From Camelus ferus (Eukaryota), in NCBI RefSeq assembly GCF_009834535.1, contig NC_045701.1:29760001-29824000 (forward strand): 64,000 bases of DNA, in the 5' to 3' direction. Below are positions 14,481-42,790 of the stretch, one piece after another (the first letter of the stretch is position 1; every line of letters begins with the position of its first letter). The notes below the pieces were generated by a model. It had not been told where the DNA came from, did no database searches, and was given only the letters and a program-made list of their open reading frames with translations. The position numbers were made by a program, and so were the translations under genes.

Positions 14481-15440
14481 TCATTGCATTGGATATATTG
14501 GAATAGTTTTCCCAAGATTTAAATATTGGTTACTTAGTTTCTTTTTCACTGCTGTCTTCACTTCCTGGTTTCTCAGCGTATAGATAAGTGGATTCAGAAA
14601 GGGGGTGAAGATGGTATAGAAAACAGAGAGAACTTTGTCCACCAGGAAGTTTGTGCAAGGCCACACATAGATAAAGATGCAGGGCCAAAAGAACATTAAC
14701 ACAACTATGAAATGTGCAGTGCAGGTAGAAAAAGCCTTAGATGATCCTATGGAGGAGTGGTCCTTGATAGTGACGAGAACAGTGATGTAGGAGGTGAGCA
14801 AAAGCAGAAAGCTTACAAGAGCAATCACACCACTGGTTGAAATCATGAAGATACCAAGAAAATATATATCTATGCACGCTAGCTGGATGACCAAAGGAAG
14901 GTCACAGAAGAAACTGTCTACAACATTGGGACCACAGAAGGGTAAATAAAGAGTAAAAGCTAACTGGCTCATGGTATGCAAGAAGCCCACTGTCCAAGAA
15001 GTTACCACAAGCCCGACACACAATCTGTGGCTCATAATTGATGAATAATGGAGAGGTTTACATATGGCAATGTACCTGTCAAAAGACATGGAGATGAGCA
15101 GCACAATCTCAGTCCCAGTGAAGAGGTGCAAAAAGAAGATCTGAGAAATGCAGCCCTCAAAGGAGATGGTCTTGTGCTGAACAAAGAAGTCCATGATCAT
15201 CTTTGGAGTGGCAAAGGAGGACAGGCACATGTCAATGAGAGACAGGTTGCTGAGCAGGAAGTACATGGGGGAGTGAAGGTGTGAGGTGGACAGGACTGTG
15301 AGCAAAATCAAGCAGTTGCCCAACATGGTCATTAAATAAAAAATGGAGAACATCACAAAAAAGAAAATCTGGAGCTCAGGAGAATCAGTAAGTCCGAGTA
15401 ACACAAATTCAGACACCCTGGAATGGTTGAACGTCTCCAT
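14481..15440 (-). CDS. Olfactory receptor, family 4 subfamily K (319 aa, METFNHS...); positional candidate ortholog of human OR4K6P
   Basis: Open frame with N5 sequon, [36 protein letters not shown] and PFLNPLIYTLRN. The true start is the ATG at 15440; the ORF-track extension from 15620 starts at GTG and spans a polypyrimidine/AG acceptor. Confidence 0.9.
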   Translation of the reverse strand: METFNHSRVSEFVLLGLTDSPELQIFFFVMFSIFYLMTMLGNCLILLTVLSTSHLHSPMYFLLSNLSLIDMCLSSFATPKMIMDFFVQHKTISFEGCISQIFFLHLFTGTEIVLLISMSFDRYIAICKPLHYSSIMSHRLCVGLVVTSWTVGFLHTMSQLAFTLYLPFCGPNVVDSFFCDLPLVIQLACIDIYFLGIFMISTSGVIALVSFLLLLTSYITVLVTIKDHSSIGSSKAFSTCTAHFIVVLMFFWPCIFIYVWPCTNFLVDKVLSVFYTIFTPFLNPLIYTLRNQEVKTAVKKKLSNQYLNLGKTIPIYPMQ

Positions 15441-17316
15441 TGATCTGCAGGCTCTGCTGTATAATGACAAAATCAAACCAAATGACAGAGCTGGAAAGTA
15501 CGATACTTCTACAATTACGTATGGAGGAGTTATGGTATCAGTTAATAATTCACTAGAATGTTGATTACCTAAAATCCATCTAATAACTATCTCAGTAAAG
15601 GTTTTTATTTTTGGAACCACTTAACAATTGCTATCAGGTATCACCACAAATGGACAACTTGATTTTGATCAGCATGAAGTACATGCTGGGTTATAATCTG
15701 CACATTCCTTTCTGCATGCTGACTTAGGAGTTACATAATCCACAGTTACAGAGGAAGATTACACTGAGTGAGCGTGCTCTACTTAACAAGTCAGATACTT
15801 TAAAATTTAAATGGGGGTTAAACTCTCAGAATTTTCTATTAAACCCCTCCAAAAAAAGCAATTATATTGAGTCTACTATTGTTGAATGCTGGATTTAAAT
15901 AACAGTTTAACATAATGATTTCAGAAGACCCATTTAGTATCCTTTGAGGGTGATAAATGATTTCTTCTTTAAATAACCTCCTGTTTTCTTAACTACAGAA
16001 AAATCCATTCCACTGTCATTTCATTTGCACCTTTTCAAATTGTTTTGTCAATATTGATATGTACTATTATAACTATGAATATGTAAATGATAAATTAATT
16101 TCTTAATTCCATAAAATTACTGATGACCAAAAGGTTTACCTGTAACAGATTAGTTATTCTCAACTTTGTTATTTTATGATCTCATAGAAACATTTTTTAA
16201 AAAGAGGGAGAAATATCCTTCCTTTGTTTCTCCTCATGTTACTAAAAGAAGGCTATTTTTTTAGACTAGAAAAAAGAGAAAAAGAGTCTAGGACAAGGCC
16301 AGGAAATATACAAGATGAAAGTTGGGCCTCTTGTAGTACCAGCATATATGATGCTCAAAGCAAAACAAAGCAAACAAAAAAGAACCCACATTAATTATGG
16401 TAAGTCAAAGTAGTACCAGAGGCAACTGAAAGAAAATAAAGAAAGATACATTAAGGACTCAGCCTCATTTTTCAAAATTGAGTTTTTGATTTACAGTGAA
16501 TTGTAAATTCTGCAAATATCTCCTGTGACATTTTTCATTTAAGTGACCTCCTGTTTTCCCATGTGGAGAAAAATCTGGCTTTATCCTTACTTACTTGCAA
16601 ATATTCAAATTGTTCTGTCAATATTGATAAATATTTTTAAGATTGTCAGAGAACAATATTCCTGAGATTCTAAAACTGAACTGTGGCAAAGTAGTTATGA
16701 AAGTTAAGGTATCCTTGACCTGCTGTGTGACCTTGATGTTACCTTAGTAGCCTCTCTAAGATATGGCCTCTTCACCATGAGAATTAAACTAGATGGTCTG
16801 TCTAAAGCACTAAGCATATTTCCTGGGCAACATTCAAGAATTCTCTAGGTTTTGAAATTCAAATTTAAGAATACTGTTCAGAAATAATCAGCTTATTTCA
16901 TTAATAGTAACAATAATTTCAGTAAAAATATTCTAACCTAGTTTCAATTTAGTGATTTAGAAAAAGATGTGGACTTCCAAAATCATTTCATCTTCTTAAA
17001 GTTAAATTACTTCTTTTCTTATAAAAATGATATGAGTATCTTGATATATTAAAGGCATTAAAAATTCTCATCCTCAGATCTTTCCATATCTCTTCTATTT
17101 TCCTGAATTAATTTATGAGGACACAAAAACTATAATTATACCTAATTTACATTATATAAATATATAATGAATGTATTATGTATTCATTATAAATGAATGA
17201 ACAGTTACCAGGTTTTTTCTTCTTTCATCTTCAGCAAAGCATCTCTGTTACCTATTTAATCAAATCATCTGTCTATGTCTTCAAATTATATACATTTTTT
17301 CTTTGCTGATCCTCTG

Positions 17317-17446
17317 TTTTTTTTTAATTTATATTTTTGGGAGGGAGGTAATTAGGCTTATTTGTTTATTTATTTTAGTGGAGGTACTGGGGATTGAACC
17401 CAGAACCTCGTGCATGCACTCTACCATTGAACTATTCCCTCCCCCC
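17317..17446 (-). mobile_element. tRNA-Ala-derived SINE (vic-1-like) with internal deletion
   Basis: Minus strand GGGGGGAGGGAATAGTTCAATGGTAGAGTGCATGCACGAGGTTCTGGGTTCAATCCCCAGTACCTCC plus A-rich tail; flanks tcctctgtt and tcctctatt look like a TSD. Confidence 0.85.
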
Positions 17447-19035: not shown

Positions 19036-20459
19036 ATAAAGTAGAATTTTAAAAAGCAAAACCAAGTAATTCAGTACAATGGCAAGTTACAAAATAAGCA
19101 AACGAAACCAGTATCTTTCTGATGAATGAACAATTACTTGTTAAAGTACATGGATGAGCAATAGAATATATAAAGTAAATAGGAATAATATTAATCAGAA
19201 ATGTATCTTGGGGACAAAAGCTGTACTACTCTACAGAAGGGAAAAAAGTTGAATAAATTGAAGTTCATACTGTATTACTGGAAGGAGAAATTCAGTTGTT
19301 CAATATATAAATTCCACTAAAGACTTAAAATAATTTTCAGAATTTTTCTAGAGGTAAATCAGGAAAGTGGTTAGGAATTAGAAATAACATTTATTATATG
19401 CAAAATTATTATAAAATGAAATAGTAAAATAATTAACAAAAAACATGGGATGTGTGTGACTAAAAATTAATGTAATGGAACTGGGAGGACACCAAGTAGA
19501 GATAGACCAAAGAATATATTAGAATTTACAATATTATAATGTTTACAGGATTATAACAATTGGCAAACGGGACTTTTCAGATGGAGTTAAGTTTGCTAAT
19601 CAACTTTAGAATAAGACCAGCTCAGTGTAATCACAAGTGATAGAGGGATTTTGCAGATACCAACAAACTATTCTAGAGTTTGTGTCAGTATTTATCAATA
19701 GGTGATACAAATCAAATGGATAAAATGAACATGCTTATTTTTTAAAGAAATTAAAATGAAAATTGAACACATGAAAAAATACATGTAATTTATCTGTACC
19801 AATATTGAATCACTATGTTGTACATCTGCAACTAATAAAATCTCATCTACCAATTTTATCACAATTAAAAAAAGTTAGGAAAAAATGCACTTAATCAATA
19901 GACATTGTTTGCAATAGTCAAAACTGAAAGCTATAATAAATATAATACTCCTGTCTTTTCCAAATCATAAATCTTTAAAACAAAGCAAATACTACTCTTA
20001 GAAATAGCAAGGACAGATAATTCCATATATTGTTGGTGGAAGATTAAATTGACAGAATTTCACTATATATCAAAGTTTATTCCTTGTGACCTAGTAATTG
20101 TTCTTCTAAAAATTTATTCCCAGAAAATACTCAAATAAGAGTAAAAAGTTGTATTTAAAACATTTTTATATAAACTTAGCTTATAACAGCAAAATTCTAA
20201 ATATACAAAAGCAGGGGATTATTTAATAAATAATAATAAATGGTAATTGAATAATTCATAGTCATTTGAGTATTATGATCTATATTTATTTAAAACATGC
20301 CTATAGTATTAAAATTATAAACTACATGTATGATATGATCCAATTTTTATAAAAATAATTATGTGTTTATAGAAGTAAAACTGACAAAATTTTAATATTA
20401 AATATTTCTAAATGATAGCATTGGATGTAATTTTCATATTGTTCTTTATTTATTTAATA

Positions 20460-23549: not shown

Positions 23550-24025
23550 ACTATTGGTATCTCCAATGAGTTCTAATCATTTTTACATTCATCTGTTATA
23601 TCCTGGTCAATCTGACTTTGCTGTGTTTGTCAAATATACCAAATTCATTACCATCCTCAGAATTTTTGCACTGTATATTCCCTCTGCCTGGAGTGCTCTG
23701 CCTGCTGCTGTCTGCACAGTGGCATCTTCGGTTTATCTAAATATCAGCCAAAATGACATCTGCTCATAGTCGTCTCCCTGCGACGACTAAAAGTAAGGTC
23801 ATTACCCCGGTCTCACAGTTACAATCTAATATTTTGCTTTTCGTTTTAGTTCTTGAAACCCTCCTGTTTATTTTCTATGTTATTGGCTGTTTATTCCTAC
23901 TAAATTGTAACTTCAGGAGGGCAGTGACATTACCTGTCTCCTTGATAGCTATTTCTCCTGGTGCCGAGAACAGTCCTGACAGACAGCGGATGATCAATAA
24001 ATGTAGTGTTGGGAAAATGAATACA
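23550..24025 (+). mobile_element. L2 3' end immediately downstream of the OR4N2-like stop codon
   Basis: tttgcactgtatattccctctgcctggagtgctct...gggcagtgac...cctgacagacagcggatgatcaataaatgt is a canonical L2 tail. Confidence 0.7.
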
Positions 24026-24083
24026 TTAATGTCACATGAAATTCTCCAGTTTCAATTTTCTTATTCATTTTTCCCACGTTTTA

Positions 24084-25007
24084 TCAGGCTAAGTGCTGAT
24101 AAAATAACTTTCTCACTGAAGCTTTTATTTCTTGGTTGCGTAGGGTATAAATCACAGGGTTCAATAAAGGAAAGATCACTGTATGGCAAAAAGAAACCAC
24201 CTTGTCTGCTGGTAAGGCTCTGAAGGGGCGGCTATAGATAAAGATGCCAGGCCCAAACATGAGAAATATAACGATGATATGGGTGGTGCATGTGGACATG
24301 GCCTTGCTCTTCCCCTCAGAGGAGGAACCACGTACACGGCAGAGAATGACTGCATATGAGACCAGAAGCCCCAATAAACACAGGAGAGTGAGCAGGCCAC
24401 TGTTGAAGACCATCAGGAGCTCCACCACAAAGGTGTCAGTGCAGGCCAGCTTGATGACCTGCGGCACATCACACAAGAAGTTGTCCAATAGGTTTGGACC
24501 ACAGAAGGGCAAGCGGAGGATGAGGGCCACCTGGATAATGGAGTGCACAAATCCCCCAATCCAAGGAGCCAACAGCAAGACATGGCAAGCTCTTGGGTTC
24601 ATGACGGTAGAGTAGTATAAAGGACGACAGATGGCAATGTAGCGGTCAAAGGCCATCACAACTAGGAGAAACCCTTCGCCTGCTCCAAGGAAGTGCAAGA
24701 AAAAGAGCTGAGTGATGCAACTGTTATAAGATATCACCTTCTTCTCAGAGAAGAAGTCCGCCAGCATCCTGGGAGCCACAATGAAGGAGTAGGATGCATC
24801 CAGGAAGGCCAAGTTGCCCAGAAAGAAGTAGAGAGGGGCCGTGAGGCCAGGGTCTGACCTGATGGTGAGGATGATGAAGAAATTTCCAGGGAGGATGATG
24901 AGGTAGAAAATTAGAACTAGCACAAAGACCAGGAGCTGAATACTTTGAGACTGGGTCAAACCAACAAGGATAAATTCGGTCACCACTGTATTGTTCTCAG
25001 TCTCCAT
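24084..25007 (-). CDS. OR4N2: Olfactory receptor OR4N2-like (copy 1, 307 aa)
   Basis: Intact OR frame with [19 protein letters not shown] and [12 protein letters not shown]; short C-terminus RKLFYQHLA of the OR4N2 type (human recalled as KKVFNKHIA). Confidence 0.9.
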
Positions 25008-25016
25008 CTCCTCTGC

Positions 25017-25045
25017 CTGCAGATCATAAAGAAACAGAGTTCATT
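25017..25045 (-). promoter_or_regulatory. Splice acceptor 9 nt upstream of the OR4N ATG (equivalents at 35150 and 46835)
   Basis: Minus strand ctctgtttctttatgatctgcAG|gcagaggagATG; the ctgcag|gcagaggagATG junction is identical in all three OR4N copies. Confidence 0.65.
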
Positions 25046-26189
25046 GCTGTTACTATTTCTTCCACCTAGACCCTGGATGTCCTCTAGCTAAGTGTTTGAC
25101 ACACTGATCACTTCAGCCAAAAACAACAGGTTTCCATCCTCACCAATGTCCTGGGTAAATTCTGAACATTTCCTTCATCCAGATTTAAAGCAAACAAACA
25201 AACAAACAAAAAAACACTGCGCTCAGAGCTGCACTCTTACTCCCATTCAGCCCTGTGCTTCTACAGCGCTGATATCCAACTTGGGAGGCAGCATCCTGCC
25301 CTTTCTTGGAATTCCTACCTTCTTGAATCATAGGAGAAATTTCCGAATTGAGATACAATGTAACTTCAGTTATGAAGAGCTTTGCATTTTGGTGGCTGTA
25401 CTATGCTTGAGGCTGAACAGCTGTCTTGGGATTACACGCCTTTTCTCCTCATCCACCAACCCAAATGGTTTACTGAGTATTTACTTGCTTCTGTTTCTGT
25501 AGAATTTCCAGTTCCTGCCTGCTAACTCTCTGCCTTGCTCTCTGTTTCCTTCTATCACCCTCCTCAGACCTGGTGTCCTTGTAATGCCCTGACCCAAGCT
25601 GTGCCCCAGTTTCCCAACAATAGGTCCACTTGTCACCTAACTTAGAGGTAGTCTCCTAGCTGCATCCCTGGGTAAGCACCACTCCACTGCCACCCCACGG
25701 CTTGTTCATGCAGCTTAACTAACACTATGTGAATCTCAAGTACTGATTATATACTCCCGAACTCCTTCTTTCCCTCATCCCAGTATGATGCCCAAGGGAG
25801 AGCCTTTCAACAAACAATACGTTACAATACAAAATTTGCCAGTATAAATTTTTTAATTAATTATCTTGACACATTAACATTCTTAGCATAGAAGAGGGGG
25901 AAGCAACAGTAAAGCTCCTATAGTCTAAGCCATTCCTTTTAAGAGAAGAAGCTAAAGCTACTGTGGTTACAACATTTAAGTTTGGAATGAATTTTTATTA
26001 TTGTTCTGATTGACAAGTCATAGAGGAACGCAGGTTGTACCACTCAGTTTAAACACATAAAGAAGCAACACAGTTTTCAACAATGAGCGCTCTCTTTTGT
26101 GTACTGGAATAACTAAATATAATATTGCTTGTCTAAAATCACCCCTTTACAGAGCTTAGAATTAGAATTTTAACCCTGTGCAACTAAAA

Positions 26190-26495
26190 GCACATTACTT
26201 ATTTGAAGGAAAATCTGTATGTAACGCTCAGTCTGTTTAGCGCTGCAGGCTCATTCCAGAAAGGACATGTGATGATCCCCTGAAGAGTGAAAAGACGACA
26301 GTATTAAATATTTTTACATGGGTATAATTGCCCGTGTATATGTAGTTGTCACTGCCTTTTATTTTTTTAAATGCTAGTTTTAATATGTATAATATATTAA
26401 CATGATGGCATACACACTTTATGAATAAATGAGCACAAAATTAAGGCAGAAGGTCAAAAAATATTTTGTTATGGGTATGAACAGTTTGAAAATTG
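26190..26495. mobile_element. Possible hAT-Charlie DNA transposon remnant (also at about 36325-36630)
   Basis: AT-rich with a terminus-like aaaaatattttgttatgggtatgaacagtttgaaaa; family not securely recognised. Confidence 0.3.
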
Positions 26496-28754
26496 TCAAT
26501 CTACAGAAAAATACAACATATTACCTGTAACACAGTGTATATTACGTATAACGTTTAACTTAATAGCACAATTGTGTTAAGTAAGTTCTGTGGAACATTG
26601 GATACAAAGCAGAGTGAAAACCTTTGACAGAAAAAGCTCGTGACTCACTACTCAGGAACGAAAGCTAGAAAGGGAGAAGTCTGAATGAAAATAGAAGAGG
26701 AAAGAAATAGAGAAGCAAAAGAAAAACCCAAAACAATTAAGTGCATATAGTACATTGCTATGGTACATATTATAGGAAGCAGTAAACATATCTGCTTTAA
26801 GCATCTCTAGAGCTGAGGGGAATGGCTAATACACAGGTCTCCGTGTGTGACTACTGCCAGCCCCAGACGCACTTTATCAAGTCATATTTTAACATACCAG
26901 CATGTACACGCACACAAAGACCAGACACACACACACAGGAAAGTGGGGCCTACCCAAAACTGTAATAGAAAAATATTCTGTAGGCTCTTCCATTAGCTTC
27001 TCAGCTCACTTCTTAACTTTTCTCCACTGAGGAGACATTTGTCTCAGCATTCATTCCATCATCTGCCTATAAAAATACACCAGGAAACCTAGGGGTGTAA
27101 GTGAAAAGCCCCTTCTACTTACTCTTAGCTTTTGTGCATCCCCCAAGCTCACTCAGAGTTGGTTATTGCACGATGTGCCAGTGTTTGATGGTATCTCTGA
27201 CAGCAGAGGATTTCTGAAGGTTTTCGTGATGGAAGGTTATAGGTTTTTCTACTCTGCCCACTTTCCTATCTTCCATCTCTGCTTTTCACTATTACCCAAC
27301 AGACTGGAGTCCACACTCCCTGACATAGGTGGTCCATTTACTTCCCATGACCTGTTCTGGTCTATGTACTTTCCTTACCTGTGATTCTGAAATGCTGGTG
27401 GGCATAGATCCAGAGACTGTGTATCAGATAAGCATTTCTCAGAAAAACAAATTACAACTCTGGGGAAAAACCTACCAATTATGGCCCTCTTCTGCATAAA
27501 ATATACTCTTTTAGCAAAATTTATAGGAAAAGCATTATCAGAAGAGGCTGAAGCAGAAATCTAAATTCTCACCACTACATCTCTCATCTTCCTTGCCACT
27601 GCTGCTAATTAAGAGGCACCTCTGACTCCAGCAGTGATGGCACAGTAGAGGCTGGGGAAGGCCAGGGAGACAGGCTCTCTCAACGTCGGGTGGAGACACA
27701 CACATCCTCAGACAACACTGTGCCTACAAGGACTGCAAACTGTGCTCAGACCAGCTCCTGGATTCCCGCGTTTAGAGACCCAAGGAGCTCCCTTCCCCAG
27801 CTCTTTGAAACATTTCCTCATGCTTCCTCCCTCATTTTCCCTCTTTTCTCTTCTCTCCCCTTTCATGCATCAACAAGCCTTTGATTTCCCAATTTACTTT
27901 TGTAAGTTTGATTGCAGTTTCTTTCTCCTGTTAATTTACGGCCTCTCATTTTCCCCTAATCTTCTTTCTCTTTTAATTTTGCTGTCTTTGAATCGCACTC
28001 TTCTTTATCATTTTCTCTTCTTTCTCCCTCTCATTTATTCAGGTTCCTTCACTCTGAGATGTGTTCCCTCTCTCCACTTGTCCTGAGATTCATTGCTACT
28101 CCATTATATCTCATGCTTCTCTTAGAATTATATTTAAAAAAGCACACCTCATTGTTGTTTCCTTTCAAGCAAGAATGAGCACTGTGTAGCTTCCCACCAT
28201 CTCCCATTCTAAACATTACATCCACAAAATAAAATTGTATATTTCACTGCAGTACTAAATATTCTCTCTCGAATAGAGAAAATTTTTTCAATTTACCAAA
28301 TCTGAACCACTCAATTGCTTCTCATTTCCTCATATTTCTTTTGCATGTAAGTGAACCTGATAAAACAAGTTACATTTTAAGAAAAGTAAATCTAATTAGC
28401 ATAATTCTAATAAAATGACTATAGCTAACAAGGTTTCCAACAGTTTGAGTGCAATGTCTGTCAGCGTATTGATTGAAGCTTGAAAATTCTTTAAGGGTAA
28501 ATTAACATGTTTACATATTCTGAAAAATGTAGCTCAGACTGAAACGTGATCAAATATTTAATTGGTACTGATGCAGATGACTGATTTATAAAGTCACTGC
28601 ATATATAAAGTGACTGATGTATAAATACACTGAACAAATGTCTAGATCTTCAGCAAGGAAACTCCCTCATCAATAAAGTGGAATGGTTAAATTAAATTAC
28701 CTCTAGATTTCCTGCAAATGTTGTATTTTTTACTCAGTATTAGAATTCTGCCTG

Positions 28755-28875
28755 GTTTGGAATCATTGTATCTGATTTGAATACTTTGGCTGAGCAATGC
28801 ACTAACTACATGGCCTGGGCAAATCACTTAGCTTTCAGAAGTCTGAGTTTTCATTCAAGAAATAGAATAAAGTAT
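28755..28875 (+). mobile_element. MIR fragment (also 38895-39015)
   Basis: tttgaatactttggct...actaactacatggcctgggcaaatcacttagctttcagaagtctgagttttcattc. Confidence 0.55.
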
Positions 28876-30184
28876 TGACTCTTCCTAACTGACAGGAATG
28901 ATCTGCGGATCAAATTGTGGTGATGACAGTAACACTAACTCATCAAATAAGTTCAAACCAAAGCTAATCCTGAAAATATTTAGATGGAAAAGACAGTGCT
29001 GATGATCAGACACATCATCACTAGTGCCTTTGTCAGTGTCTTTGAGTGAACCCTGGCTGATGGTAGCTGCATAAATCTGAGTGACTAGCAGAGAGAAGAA
29101 ATTGTACAGGTGAAAAAACCCTTCTTGCAAAATTCCGAATGCAGTCAGCTGTTTGTATACCAAGTTTTTCTCAGTTTCACAACTCTCTCTCTCCATCAAA
29201 GCCCTGTATTGATGAATAATGGAACCATTGGTAACAGAAGAAACTCAAATATGTTGAGTATGGAAATTAAGACATCCGGGGAATGCTCTGAAAAATCATA
29301 AAATCGGTGAAGTTTTCCTCTGGAACCTTTAGCCTTCTCTTTTTGCATCTTCCTCCCTTTCATCTGTCCTTTATAAGGAAAATAAATCATTCATTGCTTG
29401 CCCCTTGGTTTTCAACCAAATGTCAACTCTATGGAAGCTATTGCTATTTTCACTTAATAATGGTGTAGAATGAAAGTTTCTGTCCACCATTACACTCATT
29501 CTAAGCATCAAGAGCAGATGGAAATCTATTGGAGAGAGGGTAGAAAATGCCACACTGCTAAATTTAGACTTAAGCCTCTGGCTTTTCCTGTTGAATCTCT
29601 GACCTCTATTCCATTGCATTCCAAGGCAGCAGATGAACCAGCAGAATAGTTGCAACAGGGTTTCTATTGTCTTCTTGTTTCTTGTGAGTATGAATAGCCC
29701 CCAGCCCGAGAAATGCCAGTCTGCAGGTTTTATGTAACTCTCCTCCCCACCCTGGAAACACATTAACTGACCGTTTATGTCATTGTTCATTAATATTTAT
29801 TCTCACATAGGGAAGCTGAGACTTTGAAATCTCCTCCAACTCTTTATGATGCAATGGAGAAAGTGCTTTGGAGATCTGAGACTACCCGCCCCACTGAATA
29901 TTTCCAAAGGGAGTTATTAGACTGTAAACTAAATTAGGCAAGGAAACATACCAGAGCTTCGTAAAGGACAGATATTTTAGAATGTGTCAGGTAGTGTCAC
30001 ACTGTGTTAATCCTGTATTCTAACACCAAAATCCTATCAGTGAGTGAGAGAATCCAACTCTATTTGGAGTTCTGTTTCTTAGGTCAAAAGTAAATAGAAG
30101 GTTAGGAAAAGTTCATTTACATCTTACAATAAAATTGAAAATGAGAAAAAATGTAAATAAATGCTGAGATTGTTGGGAAGGAAG

Positions 30185-30520
30185 CAGGGTCAGGGTGAAG
30201 ATGAGACAAGTGAGGGTATTGCCTCAGGCATCAAATTTATAATGATAGCAAAACCTTAGCAATTAAAATTTTAAAAAATAAAGTGAAATAAATAAGATTT
30301 TTAATGCAATACTTTAAAGAGCAAAGTTAACGTAACAACTATGAACAGAATATCAATATTTAAAGCAAAGGCATCAACATTACAGATTTTCCTTTTGCCT
30401 CAGTTTTCACTATGGCTCAACCTGGCATTTTTACTAATCCTGCTTATATTTAAAATTTAGTATTTATTTGTTCATCATGAATTTTTAAAATTAATTTTGA
30501 TTTTTAAAAATACTAATTAA
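30185..30520. mobile_element. Palindromic hAT-type MITE (MER96B-like, name uncertain), right arm largely missing in unit A
   Basis: cagggtcagggtgaagatgagacaagtgagggtattgcctcagg... with an internal inverted repeat (tgaacagaatatcaatatttaaag vs atttaaaatttagtatttatttgttca). Confidence 0.55.
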
Positions 30521-30899
30521 GTCTACTGAATATTATGCTTTGTGAAATAAGACAGAGAAATACAAATACTGTATGATATCACTTCTATGTGGAATCTTAA
30601 AAATGTAATACAAAGTATACTGATGCAAAACAGAAACAGACTCATAGATACACAGAACAAACCAGTGGTTACCAAAGAGGAGAGAGAAGAGGAAAAGAGC
30701 AAATTAGCAGTATGAGGTTAAGAGATACAAACTACCATGTATAAAATACATAAGCAGCAAGGATATATGATATAGCACAGGAAATTATAGCCATTTTCCT
30801 GGATAATTTTTAATAGAGTGTAACTATAAAAATACTGAATCACTATGTTGTACACCTGAACTGATACAATACTATAAATCAACTCTACTCATTAAAAAA
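30521..30899 (+). mobile_element. L1 3' end (cetartiodactyl-type) inserted in the MITE
   Basis: aatattatgctttgtgaaataagacagag...aatactgaatcactatgttgtacacctgaa...aaatcaactctactcattaaaaaa. Confidence 0.85.
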
Positions 30900-31110
30900 G
30901 TGTAATATAAAGCATAATATTTAATTCTATTTTGCTTAGCGCTTCAGTGAGTTAAATCCTTTTCTTCTATCTAAGAGATAGAATGAGGAGCTAGTTATTC
31001 AGATTCTTTCAAAGGTTAAGTTGGGTCTTGGAGTCATCTTTAATTATATTGAATTTAGCTCAGATTGTGTTTTTTTTGAAATTTTTAACTGTGGTCTTTA
31101 TTGAACACTC

Positions 31111-31990
31111 TTTTTTTATTTAAACATTTCTTTATTGAGTTATACTCATATTGTGTCAAATTCCAGTGTAGAGCACAATTTTTCAGTTATACATGAAGAT
31201 ACATATATTCATTGTCACATTTTTTTTTTGCTGTGAGCTACGACAAGATCTTGTATATATTTCCCTGTGCTATACAGTATAATCTTTTTTATGTATTCTA
31301 CATATGCCTGTCAGTATCTACAAATTTTGATCTCCCAGTATCTCTTCCCACCCAAATCCCCCTTGGCAACCGCAAGTTTGTATTCTATGTCTATGAGTCT
31401 GTTTCTGTGTTGTATTTATGCTTTTTTTTTTTTTTACATTCCACATATGAGTGATCTCATATGGTATTTTTCTTTCTCCTTCTGGCTTACTTCACTTAGA
31501 ATGATATTCTCCAGGGACATGCATGTTGCTGCAAATGGTGTTATGTTGTCGGTTTTTATGGCTGAATTATTCCATTGTAGAAATATACCACATCTTCTTT
31601 ATCCAGTCATTTGTCGATGGACATTTAAGCTGTTTCCATGTCTTGGCTATTGTAAATAGTGCTGCTATGAACATTGGGGTGTAGGTGTCTTTCTGAAGTA
31701 GGGTTCCTTCTGGATATATGCCCAGGAATAGGATTACTAGGTCATATAGTAAGTCTATTCCTAGTCTTTTGAGGAATCTCCATGCTGTTTTCCACAGTGG
31801 CTGCACGAAACTGCATTCCCACCAGCAGTGTAGGAGGGTTCCCTTTTCTCCACAGCCTCTCCAGCATTGGTCATTTGTGGACATTTGAATGATAGCCATT
31901 CTGACTGGTGTGAGGTGATACCTCATTGTAGTTTTGATTTGCATTTCTCTGATAATTAGTCATATTGGGCATTTTTTCATGTGCCTATTG
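31111..31990 (-). mobile_element. Young 5'-truncated L1 (camelid-type) with a nearly open ORF2 C-terminus
   Basis: ORF 31567-31944 encodes [19 protein letters not shown]...HCWWEC...[21 protein letters not shown] (ORF2p cysteine-rich end), with a premature TAA; poly(T) at 31111; possible degenerate TSD attgaacactc / attgatcactt. Confidence 0.93.
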
Positions 31991-33404
31991 ATCACTTCTG
32001 TTTAACTCAGATTGATTTTATCTCCAGCTGCCACCAAGGAACTTGTGTCTTTGATCTCATCAGAGCCAGGAAGAGTTTCAGCCACAACTCTGATAGTTTT
32101 GTTTCCCTTAGGATTCGGCTATGTAGACACTCAACATCCAAGTACCTCATAACACTGAAAATGTGGGGATTCCCTCTGATTTTTTTTTCTTCCTTCATTT
32201 CCCTTTTCCTGAGCAAATTATAGGTGTCAGTGGGAAAAGGGAGAGAAATTTATAAAGCCAAGCTGTTTATTTTTGTGTTTTGAGCATTCTCATCTGTCCA
32301 CATCCCATGGGTCATTAGATCACCTCGTATTTTCTCACACCTACAAAAGATCCCATTTTATGGCAGAGTCACTCATTCATCTACAAGTATCCAGACTAGG
32401 TACCTGCCCTCAGGTACGGCGCTGCCATAGCTCTCCGCTCCTCTCTACAGGCCTTTCCCTTCTCTGGAGCTCAACCAAAAAACCTTCTTTGCTTCATCCA
32501 CTCTTTGATAGCCTCAGAAAAGTAAAATTTGAATTTTGTACTTTTCATATTGTCGATAATACAAGAGCAACGTCCTTCTGCAAGCTAACCAGAATCAGTG
32601 GTCTATATTCTGATGGTTCGCTTTTGAGAATAAAATTATTTTTGTGTTTTTAACTCTTTCCATTTTTCCCTTTGTTAATTGACTGTTGGTTTCAATTGCC
32701 CATGTTTCCTTCAGGGTATGTATCTATTTCATAGTCATTTATTAATTTTTTATGTATTAAGTGAATTAACTTCATTGTTTATATCAATTTCCTTAGTTAA
32801 TAGATTTTTTTTATTCTAATCTTTATGCATGAATGCTCCTCTGTACCATCCTGGGATAGGGAGAAAGCTCTCAATTCAATTTCCATGCAAACCTCTATAA
32901 TTATGCAGAAACTAACCTGCACATCCACATGTGGTGGGTAGATTTTCATCACTCTTCTCCTTTTAAGCCACACATTTTTTTTACGATGTCAAATATAACT
33001 ATCTTTCTTTTCATTTTCAATTTAATGTCGTACTTATTCGCCTTCTCACCTTCAAGGTCCTAAAACTATGATTCTGTATTTTACCACGGGTTTTTGCATT
33101 GCTTTGCTTTATTTTCCAAAGAAGCTGTGAACATATAAACAGGTTCTTCTAGGATCTTGGCATTTAAATTTCCAAATTCTGACTGTCAAATGTACTCATG
33201 AATCACTTGAATTTAGAAAAAAATTAATTGGCGAGAGAGGCAATAACATGAAAGGTGGTCTGTATCATTCTCCTGACTCCATACTGTGCTTAATTACTGT
33301 GCTCCTTCAGTGAGGAGCTGCCAAGTGGCTTCCTGTTATCCCAGTTTCCTCATTATTCAGGGATAGATCACTTGGTAGATTAGTTTTACAGTGTTTTTCT
33401 GGCA

Positions 33405-34213
33405 ATCATTTCTGAATGCCGAGCATAAAGAATGGTTGCCTACTGAAAACATTTTATAAGTACCGAATTTCTCACATTAAACCTCACTGTACTTAACAGT
33501 GATTTATGTGATCTCCAACAGAATCTGTAATACCAAATATCTATCATTACCATAATCAGATTGCAAACAATTGAGGGCAAGATTTAACATCCAGGGAGGA
33601 TTTGTAAAAACCATTAGTGATAATCATGAAGCTCTGAAAAAATCAAGGGAAATAACTTCATTACTTTTTTTCATAAAACCAATTAGTTTCCTTTCTTATC
33701 CACTACTAAACTTGGGGTGAGGGGAAGAAAATATATATGTTTCAGGAGTTTTCAAGCTTTTTAAATTGTTCAAACATATCATTTGGATTTAGATGATGTC
33801 TTGCCCTTATTGATCCTTGCCCAGAATCTTCATAATGTTGTTCTAAATCATACAAGAAACAATTGTGGATGAGTCAGTTCTGGCTTCAAATACTAAGATG
33901 AATTCTTTCTGCAATTAGAAAAAACAGAACTTCTTATCACAGCTTAAAACGCTTTTATTTTTTGACCTTTACAGCCACATATATTTTACACCCTAAATCT
34001 GTCACACTTATTCATTGTAACCCAATTACTCTTGTGTTTTCTTTTATGTTCCTTAAACATAGCACATTTACTCACTTCATATGTATATCTCTCCCCTAGA
34101 GGCTACGATAGTAACTGACAATGAGAAGGACTCAGTGAAAAACAATATTTGTTAAATGAATGAAAAAGTTGCAGCAGAATTGTCAGTTCTTGTCTTCTTA
34201 CTATACGATCCAT
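33405..34213. repeat. 3' flank of copy 2, paralogous to the 3' flank of copy 3 (about 45050-45898)
   Basis: Shared blocks such as ccaacagaatct, caattgagggcaag.tttaacatccagggaggatttgtaaaaacc and cttttatgttccttaaacatagca; about 85% identity by eye. Confidence 0.9.
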
Positions 34214-35140
34214 TCAGCAGATCACATGCCGACTCAATAGTCTCCTCATGGACGCTTTCACTTCCTGGTTGCGAAGGGTGTAAATCACAGGGTTCATCAA
34301 AGGAAAGATCACTGTATGGAAAAAGGAAACCACCTTGTCTGCTGGTAAGGCTCTGAAGGGGCGGGTGTAAATGAAGATGCCAGGCCCAAACATGAGAAAT
34401 ATAACGATGATATGGGTGGTGCATGTGGACATGGCCTTGCTCTTCCCCTCAGAGGAGGAACCACATACACGGCAGAGGATGACTGCATAGGAGGCCAGAA
34501 GGCCCACAAAACACAGGAGGGTCATCAGACCACTATTAAAAACCATCAGGAGCTCCACCACAAAGGTGTCAGTGCAGGCCAGCTTGATGACCTGCGGTAC
34601 GTCACAAAAGAAGTTGTCTAGTCGGTTTGGACCACAGAAGGGCAAGCGGAGGATGAGGGCCACCTGGATAATGGAGTGGACAAAGCCCCCAAACCACAGA
34701 GCCAACAGCAAGACATGGCAAGCTCTTGGGTTCATGACGGTAGAGTAGTATAAAGGACGACAGATGGCAATGTAGCGGTCAAAGGCCATCACAACTAGGA
34801 GCAACCCCTCCCCTCCTCCAAGGAAGTGCAAGAAAAAGAGCTGAGTGATGCAACCTTTATAAGATATCACCTTCTTCTCAGAGAAGAAATCCGCCAGCAT
34901 CCTGGGAGCCACAATGAAGGAGTAGGATGCATCCAGGAAGGCCAAGTTGCCCAGAAAGAAGTAGAGAGGGGCCGTGAGGCCAGGGTCTGACCTGATGGTG
35001 AGGATGATGAGGAAATTTCCAGGGAGGATGATGAGGTAGAAAATTAGAACTAGCACAAAGACCAGGAGCTGAATACTTTGAGACTGGGTCAAACCAACAA
35101 GGATAAATTCGGTCACCACTGTATTGTTCTCAGTCTCCAT
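34214..35140 (-). CDS. Olfactory receptor OR4N, chimeric OR4N2/OR4N4-like (copy 2, 308 aa)
   Basis: Intact OR frame. The N-terminus and TM6 match copy 1; the C-terminus [27 protein letters not shown] is identical to copy 3. Confidence 0.9.
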
Positions 35141-38100
35141 CTCCTCTGCCTGCAGATCATAAAGAAACAGAGTTCATTGCTGTTACTATTTCTTCCACCT
35201 AGACCCTGGATGTCCTCCAGCTAAGTGTTTAACACACTGATCACTTCAACTAAAAACAACAGGTTTCCATCCTCACCGATGTCCTGGGTAAATTCTGAAC
35301 ATTTCCTTCATCCAGATTGAAAGCAAACAAACAAACAAACAGAAAAACACTGCGCTCAGAGCTGCACTCTTACTCCCATTCAGCCCTGTGCTTCTACAGC
35401 ACTGATATCCAACTTGGGAGGCAGCATCCTGCCCTTTCTTGGGATTCCTACCTTCTTGAATCATAGGAAAAGTTTCTCAATTGAGATACAGTGTAACTCC
35501 AATTATCAGGAGCTTTGCATTTTGGTGGCTGTACTATGCTTGAGGCTGAACAGCTGTCTTGGGATTACACGCCTTTTCTCCTCATCCACCAACCCAAATG
35601 GTTCACTGAGTATTTACTTGCTACAGTTCCTGTGGAATTTCCAGTTCCTGCCTACTAACTCTCTGCCTTGCTCTCTGTTTCCTTCTATCACCCTCCTCAG
35701 ACCTGGTGTCCTTGTAATGCCCTGACCCAAGCTGTGCCCCAGTTTCCCAACAATAGGTCCACTTGTCACCTAACTTAGAGGTAGTCTCCTAGCTGCATCC
35801 CTGGGTAAGCACCACTCCACTGCCACCCCACGGCTTGTTCATGCAGCTTAACTAACACTATGTGAATCTCAAGTACTGATTATATACTCCCGAACTCCTT
35901 CTTTCCCTCATCCCAGTATGATGCCCAAGGGAGAGCCTTTCAACAAACAATACGTTACAATACAAAATTTGCCAGTATAAATTTTTTAATTAATTATCTT
36001 GACACATTAACATTCTTAGCATAGAAGAGGGGGAAGCAACAGTAAAGCTCCTATAGTCTAAGCCATTCCTTTTAAGAGAAGAAGCTAAAGCTACTGTGGT
36101 TACAACATTTAAGTTTGGAATGAATTTTTATTATTGTTCTGATTGACAAGTCATAGAGGAACGCAGGTTGTACCACTCAGTTTAAACACATAAAGAAGCA
36201 ACACAGTTTTCAACAATGAGCGCTCTCTTTTGTGTACTGGAATAACTAAATATAATATTGCTTGTCTAAAATCACCCCTTTACAGAGCTTAGAATTAGAA
36301 TTTTAACCCTGTGCAACTAAAAGCACATTACTTATTTGAAGGAAAATCTGTATGTAACGCTCAGTCTGTTTAGCGCTGTAGGCTCATTCCAGGAAGGACA
36401 TGTGATGATCCCCTGAAGAGTGAAAAGATGACAGTATTAAATATTTTTACATGGGTATAATTGCCCATGTATATGTAGTTGTCACTGCCTTTTATTTTTT
36501 TAAATGCTAGTTTTAATATGTATAATATATTAACATGATGGCATACACACTTTATGAATAAATGAGCACAAAATTAAGGCAGAAGGTCAAAAAATATTTT
36601 GTTATGGGTATGAACAGTTTGAAAATTGTCAATCTACAGAAAAATACAACATAGTGTATATTACCTGTAACACAGTGTATATTACGTATAACGTTTAACT
36701 TAATAGCACAATTGTGTTAAGTAAGTTCTGTGGAACATTGGATACAAAGCAGAGTGAAAACCTTTGACAGAAAAAGCTCGTGACTCACTACTCAGGAACG
36801 AAAGCTAGAAAGGGAGAAGTCTGAATGAAAATAGAAGAGGAAAGAAATAGAGAAGCAAAAGAAAAACCCAAAACAATTAAGTGCATATAGTACATTGCTA
36901 TGGTACATATTATAGGAAGCAGTAAACATATCTGCTTTAAGCATCTCTAGAGCTGAGGGGAATGGCTAATACACAGGTCTCCGTGTGTGACTACTGCCAG
37001 CCCCAGACGCACTTTATCAAGTCATATTTTAACATACCAGCATGTACACGCACACAAAGACCAGACACACACACACAGGAAAGTGGGGCCTACTCAAAAC
37101 TGTAAAAGAAAAATATTCTGTAGGCTCTTCCATTAGCTTCTCAGCTCACTTCTTAACTTTTCTCCACTGAGGAGACATTTGTCTCAGCATTCATTCCATC
37201 ATCTGCCTATAAAAATACACCAGGAAACCTAGGGGTGTAAGTGAAAAGCCCCTTCTACTTACTCTTAGCTTTTGTGCATCCCACAAGCTCACTCAGAGTT
37301 GGTTATTGCACGATGTGCCAGTGTTTGATGGTATCTCTGACAGCAGAGGATTTCTGAAGGTTTTCGTGATTGAAGGTTATAGGTTTTTCTACTCTGCCCA
37401 CTTTCCTATCTTCCATCTCTGCTTTTCACTATTACCCAACAGACTGGAGTCCACACTCCCTGACATAGGTGGTCCATTTACTTCCCATGACCTGTTCTGG
37501 TCTATGTACTTTCCTTACCTGTGATTCTGAAATGCTGGTGGGCATAGATCCAGAGACTGTGTATCAGATAAGCATTTCTCAGAAAAACAAATTACAACTC
37601 TGGGGGAAAACCTACCAATTATGGCCCTCTTCTGCATAAAATATACTCTTTTAGCAAAATTTATAGGAAAAGCATTATCAGAAGAGGCTGAAGCAGAAAT
37701 CTAAATTCTCACCACTACATCTCTCATCTTCCTTGCCACTGCTGCTAACTAAGAGGCACCTCTGACTCCAGCAGTGATGGCACAGTAGAGGCTGGGGAAG
37801 GCCAGGGAGACAGGCTCTCTCAACGTCGGGTGGAGACACACACATCCTCAGACAACACTGTGCCTACAAGGACTGCAAACTGTGCTCAGACCAGCTCCTG
37901 GATTCTCGCGTTTAGAGACCCAAGGAGCTCCCTTCCCCAGCTCTTTGAAACATTTCCTCATGCTTCCTCCCTCATTTTCCCTCTTTTCTCTTCTCTCCCC
38001 TTTCATGCATCAACAAGCCTTTGATTTCCCAATTTACTTTTATAAGTTTGATTGCAGTTTCTTTCTCCTGTTAATTTACGGCCTCTCATTTTCCCCTAAT

Positions 38101-41010
38101 CTTCTTTCTCTTTTAATTTTGCTGTCTTTGAATCGCACTCTTCTTCATCATTTTCTCTTCTTTCTCCCTCTCATTTATTCAGGTTCCTTCACTCTGAGAT
38201 GTGTTCCCTCTCTCCACTTGTCCTCAGATTCATTGCTACTCCATTATATCTCATGCTTCTCTTAGAATTATATTTAAAAAAGCACACCTCATTGTTGTTT
38301 CCTTTCAAGCAAGAATGAGCACTGTGTAGCTTCCCACCATCTCCCATTCTAAACATTACATCCACAAAATAAAATTGTATATTTCACTGCAGTACTAAAT
38401 ATTCTCTCTCGAATAGAGAAAATTTTTTCAATTTACCAAATCTGAACCACTCAATTGCTTCTCATTTCCTCGTATTTCTTTTGCATGTAAGTGAACCTGA
38501 TAAAACAAGTTACATTCTAAGAAAAGTAAATCTAATTAGCATAATTCTAATAAAATGACTATAGCTAACAAGGTTTCCAACAGTTTGAGTGCAATGTCTG
38601 TCAGCGTATTGATTGAAGCTTGAAAATTCTTTAAGGGTAAATTAACATGTTTACATATTCTGAAAAATGTAGCTCAGACTGAAACATGATCAAATATTTA
38701 ATTGGTACTGATGCAGATGACTGATTTATAAAGTCACTGCATATATAAAGTGACTGATGTATAAATACACTGAACAAATGTCTAGATCTTCAGCAAGGAA
38801 ACTCCCTCATCAATAAAGTGGAATGGTTAAATTAAATTACCTCTAGATTTCCTGCAAATGTTGTATTTTTTACTCAGTATTAGAATTCTGCCTGGTTTGG
38901 AATCACTGTATCTGATTTGAATACTTTGGCTGAGGAATGCACTAACTACATGGCCTGGGCAAATCACTTAGCTTTCAGAAGTCTGAGTTTTCATTCAAGA
39001 AATAGAATAAAGTATTGACTCTTCCTAACTGACAGGGATGATCTGCGGATCAAATTGTGGTGATGACAGTAACACTAACTCATCAAATAAGTTCAAACCA
39101 AAGCTAATCCTGAAAATATTTAGATGGAAAAGACAGTGCTGATGATCAGACACATCATCACTAGTGCCTTTGTCAGTGTCTTTGAGTGAACCCTGGCTGA
39201 TGGTAGCTGCATAAATCTGAGTGACTAACAGAGAGAAGAAATTGTACAGGTGAAAAAACCCTTCTTGCAAAATTCCGAATGCAGTCAGCTGTTTGTATAC
39301 CAAGTTTTTCTCAGTTTCACAACTCTCTCTCTCCATCAAAGCCCTGTATTGATGAATAATGGAACCATTGGTAACAGAAGAAACTCAAATATGTTGAGTA
39401 TGGAAATTAAGAGATCTGGGGAATGCTCTGAAAAATCATAAAATCGGTGAAGTTTTCCTCTGGAACCTTTAGCCTTCTCTTTTTGCATCTTCCTCCCTTT
39501 CATCTGTCCTTTATAAGGAAAATAAATCATTCATTGCATGCCCCTTGGTTTTCAACCAAATGTCAACTCTATGGAAGCTACTGATAATTTCACTTAATAA
39601 TGGTGATAGAATGAAAGTTTCTGTCCACCATTACACTCATTCTAAACATCAGGAGAAGACAGTAATCTATTGGATACAGGGTAGAAAATGCCACACTACT
39701 GAATTTAGACTTAAACCTCTGGTATTCCTGCTGAAGCTCTGACCTCTATTCCATTGCATTCCAAGGCAGCAGATGAACCAGCAGAATAGTTGCAACATGG
39801 TTTCTATTGTTTTCTTGTTTTTTGTAAATTGAATAGCCCCAGCCCGAGAAATGCAAGTCTGCAGGATTTATGTAACTCTTACAGTGTAGCCATCCCCCTG
39901 ACCCTGGAAACACAAAAACTGACCGTTTCTGTCATTGTACATAAAATATTTGTTCTCACATAGGGAAGCTGAGACTTTGAAATCTCCTCCAACTCTTTAT
40001 GATGCAATTGTGAAATGCTTTGGAGATTTGAGACTACCAGGACCTCACTGAATAGTTCCAAAGGGAGTTATTAGACTCTCAGCTAAATTAGGCAAAGAGA
40101 CATACCAGAGCTTCGTAAAGGACAGATACTTTAGAATGTGTCAGGTAATGCCACACTGCGTTAATCCTGAATTCTAACAGCAAAATTCTATCAGTGAGTG
40201 AGAGAATCCAACCCTATTTGGAGTCCTGTTTCTTAGGTCAAAAGTAAATAGAAGGTTAGGAAAAGTTCATTTACACCTTATGATAAAATTCAAAACGGAA
40301 AAAATGTAAATAAATGCTGAGATTGTTGGTGTACATATCAGGGAGGCAAGCAGGGTCAGGGTGAGGATGAGACAAGTGAGGGTATTGCCTCAGGCATAAA
40401 ATTTACTGTGATACCAAAACCTTAGCAAATAACATTTTAATGCAGTATTTTGAAAATCAACGTAGCAATTATGAATAGAATATCAATTTTTAAAATAAAG
40501 GCATCAACATTACAGATTTTCCTTTTGCCTCAGTTTCCAATATGGCTCCACCTGACTTTTTTACTTATCTTGCCTTTTTTTAATTTAGTATTTATTTTGT
40601 TCATTATGCATATTTTAAATTAAATTTGATTTCATAATATATTTATTAGACCTAGAGAATATTATGCTTAGTGATATAAGACAAAGACAAATACTGCATG
40701 ATATCACTTCTATGTGGAACCTTTAAAAAATAATACAAATAGCACTGTATGAAAAACAGAAAGAGACTCACAGATATACAGAATGAAGTAGTGAGGGAGG
40801 GAGGAGGGAAAGGTCAGATTAGGGGTGGGGGTTAAGAGATACAAACTACTGTGTTTACAATAGATAAGCAACAAGTATATGGGGTATAGCACTGGGAATT
40901 ATAGCTATTATCTTATAATAACTTTTAATGTTGTATAATCTGTAAAAATACTGAATCACTATGCTGTACACCTGAAACTAATAATGTAAGTGAACTATAC
41001 TTCAAAAGAA
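35141..41010. repeat. Segmental duplication unit B (5' flank of copy 2), paralogous to 25008-30899
   Basis: Same match as unit A; includes the same MIR, MITE and L1 insertions. Confidence 0.97.
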
Positions 41011-42439: not shown

Positions 42440-42790
42440 CCAATTCAACAAACACTTATTGTCTACCCTGAGCCTGGCAGTATTGTAAGTGTCAGCAAGG
42501 CAGTACAGACAAGACAAACATCCCTTTCCTTTAGAATTTTATATTCAAATGTGGGAATACCAACAATAAATGAGCAGGAAAGAAAACATCAGATAGTAAT
42601 GAGCCTTAGGACGAAAGTATGAGTGTGAGCTGGAGAGAGCCTGGGAAGGAGGTGGCTGTTCTAGGTGAGGTCAGGGAGGGCTTTTCTGAGGAGGTTTCAT
42701 TACACTGAGATCTGAGTGTCTAAAAGAAGCCACTCCGGAAAGAGGCCATCAAAAAGAAAGATCTGGTATGTTGAGGAACAGAAAAGAGGC
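42440..42790 (-). mobile_element. L2 3' fragment
   Basis: attcaacaaacacttattg...gtcagggagggcttttctgaggaggtttcattacactgagatctga. Confidence 0.7.

Follow-up and report, generated by a model that had tools for sequence, protein, structure and literature searches.

A near-identical tract upstream of two tandem OR4N-type receptor genes in camels as the probable footprint of recurrent gene conversion

How can two copies of an old tandem duplicate remain almost identical along a few kilobases when the sequence on either side of that stretch has diverged? This question is raised by a 64,000-nucleotide stretch of the Camelus ferus genome (contig NC_045701.1, positions 29,760,001 to 29,824,000; hereafter the window), in which a self-BLAST aligns unit A (24112-30889) with unit B (34245-41001) at 94.6% identity over 6.8 kb, with an A-B offset of 10133 nt that becomes 10140 nt past a 7-nt indel. 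The two units are an old tandem duplicate, and the duplication that created B took place before Old World camels and alpaca diverged.

The units are associated with two intact OR4N-type olfactory receptor genes on the minus strand: gene A (24084-25007, 307 aa), which has a Pfam 7tm_4 match at 3e-43 and OR4N2 and OR4N2-like as its closest named homologues, and gene B (34214-35140, 308 aa), which is 92% identical to A. A third OR4N-type gene, C (45899-46825, minus strand), encodes 308 aa, or 323 aa if an upstream ATG at 46870 is used. Across the OR4N-type genes, Pfam PF13853 (olfactory receptor 7tm_4) matches with E-values of 3e-43 to 7e-43, and the top named homology matches are OR4N2, OR4N4 and OR4N5. 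A three-way mosaic comparison revealed gene B to be a hybrid, A-type on its 5' side and C-type at its 3' end and in its 3' flank; gene C has its CDS and 3' flank in common with B and is without the near-identical tract. Hippo and pig possess only a C-like gene followed by A. B has the look of a hybrid that unequal crossing-over produced from A and C. The coding exons of A and B are mostly still diverged, with a synonymous divergence of 0.23 (dS 0.23 and dN/dS 0.18 over codons 85-300), a dN/dS value that leaves the idea of positive selection holding the coding regions apart unsupported.

To describe the tract we used the profile and difference list of a MAFFT pairwise alignment of A and B, together with a maximum-likelihood segmentation by dynamic programming, scored by BIC. 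The segmentation placed two sharp breaks at 25522 and 29441, lowering the BIC from 2388 for one segment to 2035. They delimit a tract at 25522-29440 in copy A (minus strand, 515-4433 nt upstream of the gene A ATG) and, in the same alignment, at 35655-39580 in copy B (minus strand, upstream of gene B). Over these 3.9 kb, 24 substitutions plus a single 7-nt indel separate the copies (0.64%), compared with 5.5% in the proximal and 9% in the distal adjoining stretch (Fisher p = 2e-38 for tract versus flanks). The first-pass annotation of this DNA had described a near-identical tract of about 3.9 kb inside an old duplication, with about 25 substitutions and one 7-nt indel, about 25 differences in the first 520 bp above the ATG, none seen over about 25530-26240 and an abrupt drop to about 90% identity. 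These counts were borne out closely: the differences just above the ATG are 24 substitutions, all in 25085-25521, the difference-free stretch covers 25522-26245, and from 29441/39581 on the copies differ by ~8% in substitutions, or 9% with indel events.

The in-tract substitutions comprise 17 transitions and 7 transversions, 5 of the 24 being in CpG context, and look like ordinary mutations. The indel is a 7-nt deletion private to window copy A (site 26517/26518). Copy B keeps the 7 nt at 36651-36657, within an imperfect 21-nt tandem repeat (TRF row 36648-36692), and all 7 are present in both copies of C. bactrianus, of dromedary assembly L002 and of alpaca, with 5 of them present in dromedary assembly L003. 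The proximal 724 bp of the tract (25522-26245, copy B 35655-36378, minus strand) show no A/B differences in any of five genomes, yet contain 29 Camelus/alpaca differences. Splitting this stretch off as its own segment was not favoured by BIC, and a spacing estimate gave p ~0.16; it is kept as a sub-tract because a window-specific derived base at 26191 is carried by both copies.

Between the tract and most of the coding exon lie two further features. A second near-identical block (24757-25084, copy B 34890-35217, minus strand), with 1 difference in 328 nt, spans the first ~250 nt of the CDS, a canonical splice acceptor (...tttatgatctgcag) 9 nt ahead of the ATG, and 77 nt upstream, with no A/B difference in 25008-25084. 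Other long-read assemblies have 0-3 A/B differences in this block, and dromedary L002 has 10, located in its indel-ridden A copy. Because the acceptor sits so close to the ATG, the tract, which the first-pass annotation took for probable intron and 5'UTR exon, would be intron or sequence further upstream. The second feature is a divergent island (25085-25521, copy B 35218-35654, minus strand), in which the 24 substitutions fall within 437 nt around a mismatch-dense core at 25336-25376, and which conversion has overrun in C. bactrianus as well as in one of the dromedary assemblies. On its distal side the tract meets an old and unconverted flank (29441-30889, copy B 39581-41001, minus strand), at 9% and then 20% divergence, whose first ~100 nt form a mismatch-dense wall where the Camelus conversions end. 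Given that the block best conserved against hippo and pig (29808-29907) lies just beyond the tract, the tract itself may be purely intronic.

Several candidate features of this region were set aside. An open reading frame coincident with the divergent island (25092-25502, plus strand, 136 aa) is a chance ORF of low complexity with a stop in copy B. The largest ORFs in the tract gave no Pfam domain beyond a sub-threshold HicB match (E 0.05), and the Rfam scan of the window gave no match inside the tract. O/E (EBF) sites (TCCCNNGGGA with at most 1 mismatch) numbered 16 against 13.2 expected, which is uninformative, and a promoter/terminator scan was of bacterial design and irrelevant to a camel locus. 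A young transposon is ruled out, since the whole upstream region aligns colinearly with the one copy that hippo and pig have (74-77%) and this alignment shows no large insertion specific to camelids; the tract is therefore old syntenic DNA rather than a young repeat.

We compared the window with assemblies of dromedary (L002 and L003), C. bactrianus and alpaca. Over 26246-29440, A and B differ within a genome by 0.75% in the window, 0.69% in alpaca, 0.09% in both dromedary assemblies and 0.00% in C. bactrianus, the window genome being the least homogenised of the five; Camelus and alpaca differ over the same interval by 3.8-4.2% in all four A/B pairings. Across the tract, paralogs inside one genome are thus closer than orthologs across species (0-0.75% versus 3.3-4.2%). 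The core (25522-29129) contains 120 fixed differences between Camelus and alpaca, present in every genome and in both of its copies, and none of the 21 window A/B differences recurs in alpaca, compared with 17/32 in the 3' CDS, 11/23 in the island and 15/60 in the distal flank (29441-30239). The longest exact A/B match, found without alignment, is the 724-bp sub-tract in the window, 4790 bp in C. bactrianus, 3831 and 4021 bp in the dromedary assemblies and 2020 bp in alpaca, whose homogenised core is 25544-29246. Furthermore, segment trees show that the genealogy switches along the sequence, from grouping by lineage in the tract to grouping by paralog in the flanks. The tract tree separates alpaca from Camelus (100/100), and the Camelus copies fall into two groups, one of window B with both C. 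bactrianus copies (W_B, X_A, X_B) and one of window A with both dromedary copies (W_A, D_A, D_B); A and B are each monophyletic in the trees of the distal flank (29448-30239, 85/94) and of the 3' CDS (100/100). In the Camelus assemblies the A-B spacing is 10133-10141 nt, each copy keeping its own flanks, without copy-number change.

From these sequence comparisons, the tract is very probably the footprint of recurrent interlocus gene conversion between tandem OR4N units 10.1 kb apart. Concerted evolution is limited to a mostly non-coding stretch of ~3.7-4.8 kb upstream of the coding exon. The first-pass annotation had proposed a recent non-allelic gene conversion, to be checked against tract boundaries in other camelids; in the four other assemblies a near-identical A/B tract lies in the same place with lineage-specific sequence, and conversion holds as the mechanism, given a tract that groups by lineage and flanks that group by paralog. 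Its notion of one recent event does not hold, as conversion has been recurrent and bidirectional, and only the sub-tract at 25522-26245 looks truly recent in the window genome.

The direction of conversion, polarised using the window haplotypes and alpaca, differs between lineages. In dromedary, both copies carry the window A haplotype, with 8 A-lineage derived states in common with window copy A, and the transfer was from A to B; in C. bactrianus, both copies carry the window B haplotype, with B-type states in common with window copy B, and the transfer was from B to A, over 4,790 bp of exact identity. Both tracts have their distal ends between 29447 and 29466, and the end of an older homogenisation in Camelus falls within 29398-29441. 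The window A and B haplotypes are 0.61% apart, and single-copy DNA differs between C. ferus and dromedary by 0.29-0.38%, about half as much. Because of this excess, and because the 8 derived states of window copy A are found in both dromedary copies, the two haplotypes must predate the dromedary/Bactrian split. Recent introgression from dromedary as the source of the window A haplotype was rejected, as window and dromedary A copies differ by 0.3-0.46%, which is not below single-copy divergence. On the Camelus branch, weak-to-strong and strong-to-weak changes stand at 21:4 in the tract and 11:3 in a single-copy control, with no tract-specific excess of GC-biased substitution over that control. 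We note that the exact 4.8-kb identity in C. bactrianus could in principle be inflated by consensus polishing of near-identical repeats, as could the dromedary variants present in both copies of an assembly (28473, 26877, 26486, 26361). In addition, alpaca has one more B-like unit in its array, and its copy B has A-like distal sequence; part of the alpaca homogeneity may come from unequal crossing-over, not conversion.

We infer from this pattern that the repair of germline breaks would repeatedly take the paralogous copy as template, so that one copy is overwritten. Such a history would call for one or more homogenisations in the Camelus stem lineage, a single A-to-B transfer in dromedary and a single transfer in the opposite direction in C. 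bactrianus. It would also include a short and recent exchange at 25522-26245 in the window lineage, and alpaca would have been homogenised independently. Both parental haplotypes survive in the window genome, the A-type in copy A and the B-type in copy B, and for this reason it shows 0.64% rather than 0% divergence. The sequence next to the tract would never have been converted and would now be too mismatched for heteroduplex extension, with a local mismatch of ~15-20% at 29441-29536 and 25336-25376 and of 7% in the 3' CDS, so that successive tracts stop at the same places. The edge would then maintain itself, with identity on the inside permitting further conversion and divergence on the outside blocking it. 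Mismatch density alone can account for the halt of conversion in the coding region. A further reading takes the tract as a long-lived conversion hotspot favoured by selection, in which cis-regulatory sequence common to both copies (a 5' exon, a promoter or choice elements) keeps receptors with different ligand pockets under the same control. We regard this as unlikely; if true, coding differences would be shielded from conversion, the partition would have been stable since before the camel/alpaca split, and the per-site conversion rate would exceed the human average by one to two orders of magnitude.

Of the explanations that dispense with recurrent conversion, cycles of unequal crossing-over with gain and loss of whole units would suit the hybrid appearance of B itself and the extra B-like unit of alpaca, with ~97% identity along whole ~9.1-9.2-kb units. 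However, the identical stretch lies inside the unit in all three Camelus genomes, flanked on either side by old paralog-specific differences, with constant copy number and spacing; an internal tract with unchanged spacing requires two exchanges, which amounts to conversion, and we find such cycles a very improbable substitute for it. It is also very doubtful that a single recent conversion (or a double crossover or partial re-duplication) unique to the window genome produced the tract. The window taken alone does present one clean 3.9-kb step, but dromedary, C. bactrianus and alpaca are homogenised at the same tract with different donor haplotypes, and the window haplotypes, at 0.61% against 0.29-0.38%, are older than the dromedary/Bactrian split.

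An assembly mosaic or collapse, which the first-pass annotation had offered as its alternative, is very unlikely. Under it, the copies would truly be ~9% apart, or A- and B-type alleles would have been assigned to different copies. Identity of 99.4% across 3.9 kb is indeed difficult for short-read assemblers, and in an older short-read assembly a 51-bp tandem duplication sits right on the edge of the tract (39530-39580), which shows that assemblers do falter at this site. Against this, five assemblies from four taxa, made with differing technologies, have the tract in the same position with lineage-specific content, and each haplotype exists independently, the A-type in dromedary and the B-type in C. 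bactrianus. The older and independent C. ferus assembly (L010), in which only copy B is covered, joins the B-type haplotype to the distal flank of B (21/24 substitution differences) and departs from that haplotype at 3 private sites. Moreover, A- and B-type states begin at most 19-25 nt from flank-specific differences, so that edge-spanning reads link tract type to flank. The accompanying premise that 99% is near allelic divergence also fails, as 0.06% separates the older same-species assembly from the window across 16 kb. Finally, strong purifying selection on a conserved regulatory block without exchange between copies is almost certainly wrong, for although two expressed-looking receptor genes lie downstream of the tract and a role for promoter homogeneity has been suggested in V1R families (PMC1955453), Camelus and alpaca differ in the tract by at least as much as in the single-copy neighbourhood (3.3-4.2% versus 2.1-3.4%), a neutral rate that excludes constraint as the sole explanation, identity to hippo and pig is 60-85% without a strong peak, in contrast to the CDS, and constraint could not produce 120 parallel fixations in both copies.

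Recurrent conversion makes the camel OR4N locus a well-resolved natural case of concerted evolution persisting in one internal island of an old duplicate, in several lineages and in both directions, with common edges that are apparently self-maintaining. Paralogous receptors can thus share an all but identical 4 kb of upstream sequence and yet remain distinct in their coding regions. Short reads cannot separate the copies over the tract, and variant calls there will mix paralogs; likewise, trees based on the tract misdate the duplication (about 0.6% in the tract versus 8-20% in the flanks). Should the promoter fall within the tract, these two genes would offer a natural test of whether identical upstream sequence leads to equal receptor choice.

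Conversion upstream of the OR4N genes is a known kind of process, of which this locus is a good, clean example. In the primate fetal globin genes, tandem duplicates evolve in concert up to a fixed conversion boundary, and gene conversion occurs in olfactory receptor clusters, such as MOR28 in mouse and the chromosome 17 cluster in primates. As in these cases, the camel duplicates stand in tandem at a distance of a few kb, the converted segment has sharp bounds, events have recurred in separate lineages and alleles differ in tract extent; unlike these coding-centred cases, homogenisation affects a non-coding upstream stretch, and the coding exon is mostly diverged. In mouse V1R subfamilies, homogenised promoter regions have been attributed by the authors to gene conversion (PMC1955453). 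There too, upstream non-coding regions of chemosensory paralogs are much more alike between paralogs than between orthologs, but the V1R regions contain mapped transcription starts, whereas the camel tract may be intron throughout. In human segmental duplications, conversion tracts of several kb are documented, 6.26 kb long on average (Vollger et al. 2023, PMC10172114), and for human gene duplicates a mean conversion tract of 250 bp has been estimated (Harpak et al. 2017, bioRxiv 10.1101/135152); a camel tract of 3.9-4.8 kb is long by the latter standard, lying far above that mean. As in human interlocus conversion, copying is non-reciprocal between paralogs on the same chromosome in multi-kb tracts, and events are polymorphic or lineage-specific, bidirectional, and slowing as the copies diverge. 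Unlike human segmental duplications, however, the camel units are 10-kb tandem receptor units and their duplication is old (8-20% diverged), with only an internal island still converting.

The window sequence is identical to the corresponding part of record CM020773.1 (assembly GCA_009834535.1) and holds three tandem OR4N-type genes, all encoded by the minus strand: A at 24084-25007, B at 34214-35140 and C at 45899-46825. A Pfam olfactory receptor domain is present in all three, and their nearest named homologues are OR4N2, OR4N4 and OR4N5. The proteins of A and B share 92% identity, and both are under purifying selection (dN/dS 0.18). In both genes the ATG has a canonical splice acceptor 9 nt ahead of it, so that the sequence above ~25017 is intron or lies further upstream. 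The window also holds three more receptor ORFs: 55765-56724 (minus strand), with two masked N runs (55867-56009 and 56059-56201); an intact gene downstream of A at 14481-15448 (minus strand); and 6501-7301 (plus strand), truncated at its N terminus. An Rfam tRNA match barely over threshold (17379-17441, minus strand; 31.3 bits against 29) may be a tRNA-derived repeat or pseudogene.

Self-BLAST aligned A 24112-30889 with B 34245-41001, and likelihood segmentation placed breaks at 25522 and 29441. In window-A coordinates, A and B diverge by 7.4% in the 3' CDS (24112-24756), 0.3% over 24757-25084, 5.5% in the proximal island (25085-25521), 0.64% in the tract (25522-29440; copy B 35655-39580), 9.0% over 29441-30239 and 20% over 30240-30889, with the tract set apart from its adjoining flanks at p = 2e-38. 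The pairwise profile and difference list match almost exactly the first-pass annotation, which had counted about 25 differences in the 520 bp above the ATG and about 25 substitutions plus one indel over the next 3.9 kb. The tract contains 24 substitutions (17 transitions, 7 transversions) and one 7-nt indel, and these differences look like normal mutations. ORF, Pfam and Rfam searches found no coding or RNA-like feature in it; the top conserved non-coding block against hippo and pig lies just beyond the tract (29808-29907), with lesser peaks at 29208-29407.

We then fetched the same locus from other assemblies with receptor proteins as queries, covering dromedary (L002, L003), C. bactrianus (L006), alpaca (L001, L004) and an earlier assembly, L010, of the species that the window comes from, with hippo and pig (L008, L009) as outgroups. 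Over 26246-29440, A and B differ by 0.75% in the window, 0.00% in C. bactrianus, 0.09% in both dromedary assemblies and 0.69% in alpaca, and over the sub-tract 25522-26245 they differ at 0 of 724 positions in each genome compared. Divergence between Camelus and alpaca is 3.8-4.2% for each A/B pairing. Within the core 25522-29129, 120 Camelus/alpaca substitutions are present in both copies of each genome, and none of the 21 window A/B differences is common to alpaca; the shared counts are 17/32 in the 3' CDS, 11/23 in the island and 15/60 in the distal flank (29441-30239). Trees group the tract by lineage (support 100/100), and the distal flank (85/94) and 3' CDS (100/100) by paralog. These patterns show that concerted evolution of the two copies is limited to the tract, and that the A/B duplication is older than the camel/alpaca split.

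It is highly improbable that unequal crossing-over homogenised A and B: such exchange probably made B and altered copy number in alpaca, but it cannot leave a stretch of identity inside the unit while preserving the sequence on either side. Assembly mosaicism, raised in the first-pass annotation, is also very unlikely, as the tract occurs in five assemblies with different content and L010 is independently B-type at copy B, save three private sites. Constraint is excluded by a neutral between-species rate and by conservation that stays flat in the comparison with hippo and pig, and a young repeat by colinear alignment with both.

Conversion between the copies has recurred, and in both directions. 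In dromedary, A and B alike have the haplotype that the window shows at A, including 8 derived states in common with the window's A copy, so the dromedary event ran from A to B; its reach into the island differs between L002 and L003. In C. bactrianus the haplotype at both copies is the one that the window has at B, and the two match exactly over 4,790 bp (24683-29465 in window-A coordinates); this event ran from B to A and overran the proximal island too. The window retains both parental haplotypes, 0.61% apart, about twice the single-copy divergence between the window genome and dromedary (0.29-0.38%), and its last full homogenisation therefore predates the split of these two. A window-specific derived base at 26191, found in both copies, points to a later short exchange in the 724-bp sub-tract.

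Divergence between C. bactrianus and the window is 0.8-1.4% over the whole A unit and B-A spacer (window 24000-33000 against L006), and just 0.05-0.2% over the B unit and C-B spacer. At 9 sites the window and dromedary A copies have a derived state in common and C. bactrianus A has the alpaca state, a pattern suggestive of either a deep haplotype at the A unit or incomplete lineage sorting there. In the dromedary assembly GCA_000803125.3, 1-nt indels and mismatches cluster in the 5' CDS of the A copy and in the sequence directly above it (L002 ~20140-20400, window 24752-25279), shortening the gene call to 190 aa; the cluster is missing from the newer dromedary assembly and thus probably reflects assembly errors.

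Gene B is itself a hybrid, A-type in its upstream region and 5' CDS and C-type in its 3' end and 3' flank (33408-35224 against 45051-46904; 24112-30889 against 34245-41001; L008, L009). Since in hippo and pig there is only a C-like gene with the A unit immediately after it, B probably arose by C/A unequal crossing-over in the camelid lineage. In the CDS, A equals B above 24914, A equals C over 24390-24682, where B is the odd one out, and B equals C below 24130: the coding exon is a three-way mosaic. An extra B-like unit lies upstream of B in alpaca (L004 1-3896; 94.2% identical to the window B unit versus 87.7% to C), and the alpaca units of ~9.1-9.2 kb are ~97% alike over their full length; copy number and structure of the array thus differ between alpaca and Camelus.

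The tract edges are closely placed across lineages. The tract stops between 29447 and 29466 in dromedary and in C. bactrianus alike. For the older homogenisation in Camelus the end falls between 29398 and 29441, and the alpaca core spans 25544-29246. Just beyond the tract lie two mismatch-dense stretches, 29441-29536, with ~15 differences over 96 nt, and 25336-25376, with 9 over 41 nt, whose differences are common to alpaca and, when polarised by hippo and pig, mix A-derived and B-derived changes; they are ordinary old divergence. Mismatch-dependent anti-recombination is well established, and by this route heteroduplex extension may be rejected at such edges, which would make the edge self-maintaining. 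Exactly at the distal tract edge in copy B, L010 carries a 51-bp tandem duplication (L010 17291-17393, window 39530-39580), likely a contig-join artefact of the kind expected at a true repeat boundary. Ancient colinear similarity of ~60-63% links 29469-30147 and 39610-40301 to 49173-49856, and 41151-42768 to 49925-51175; the similarity of the A/B distal upstream region to that of C begins no more than 30 nt from the distal end of the tract, and a counterpart of the tract itself is absent upstream of C.

A literature search found no paper on the camel OR4N A/B locus. Multi-kb interlocus conversion has been documented in human duplications (PMC10172114), its fall with divergence has been modelled (10.1101/135152), and homogenised upstream regions have been proposed for chemosensory receptor paralogs, the mouse V1R genes (PMC1955453). 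The OR4N A/B locus is of the same kind as the human conversion and the V1R upstream homogenisation, and is a new, well-resolved case of a known process.
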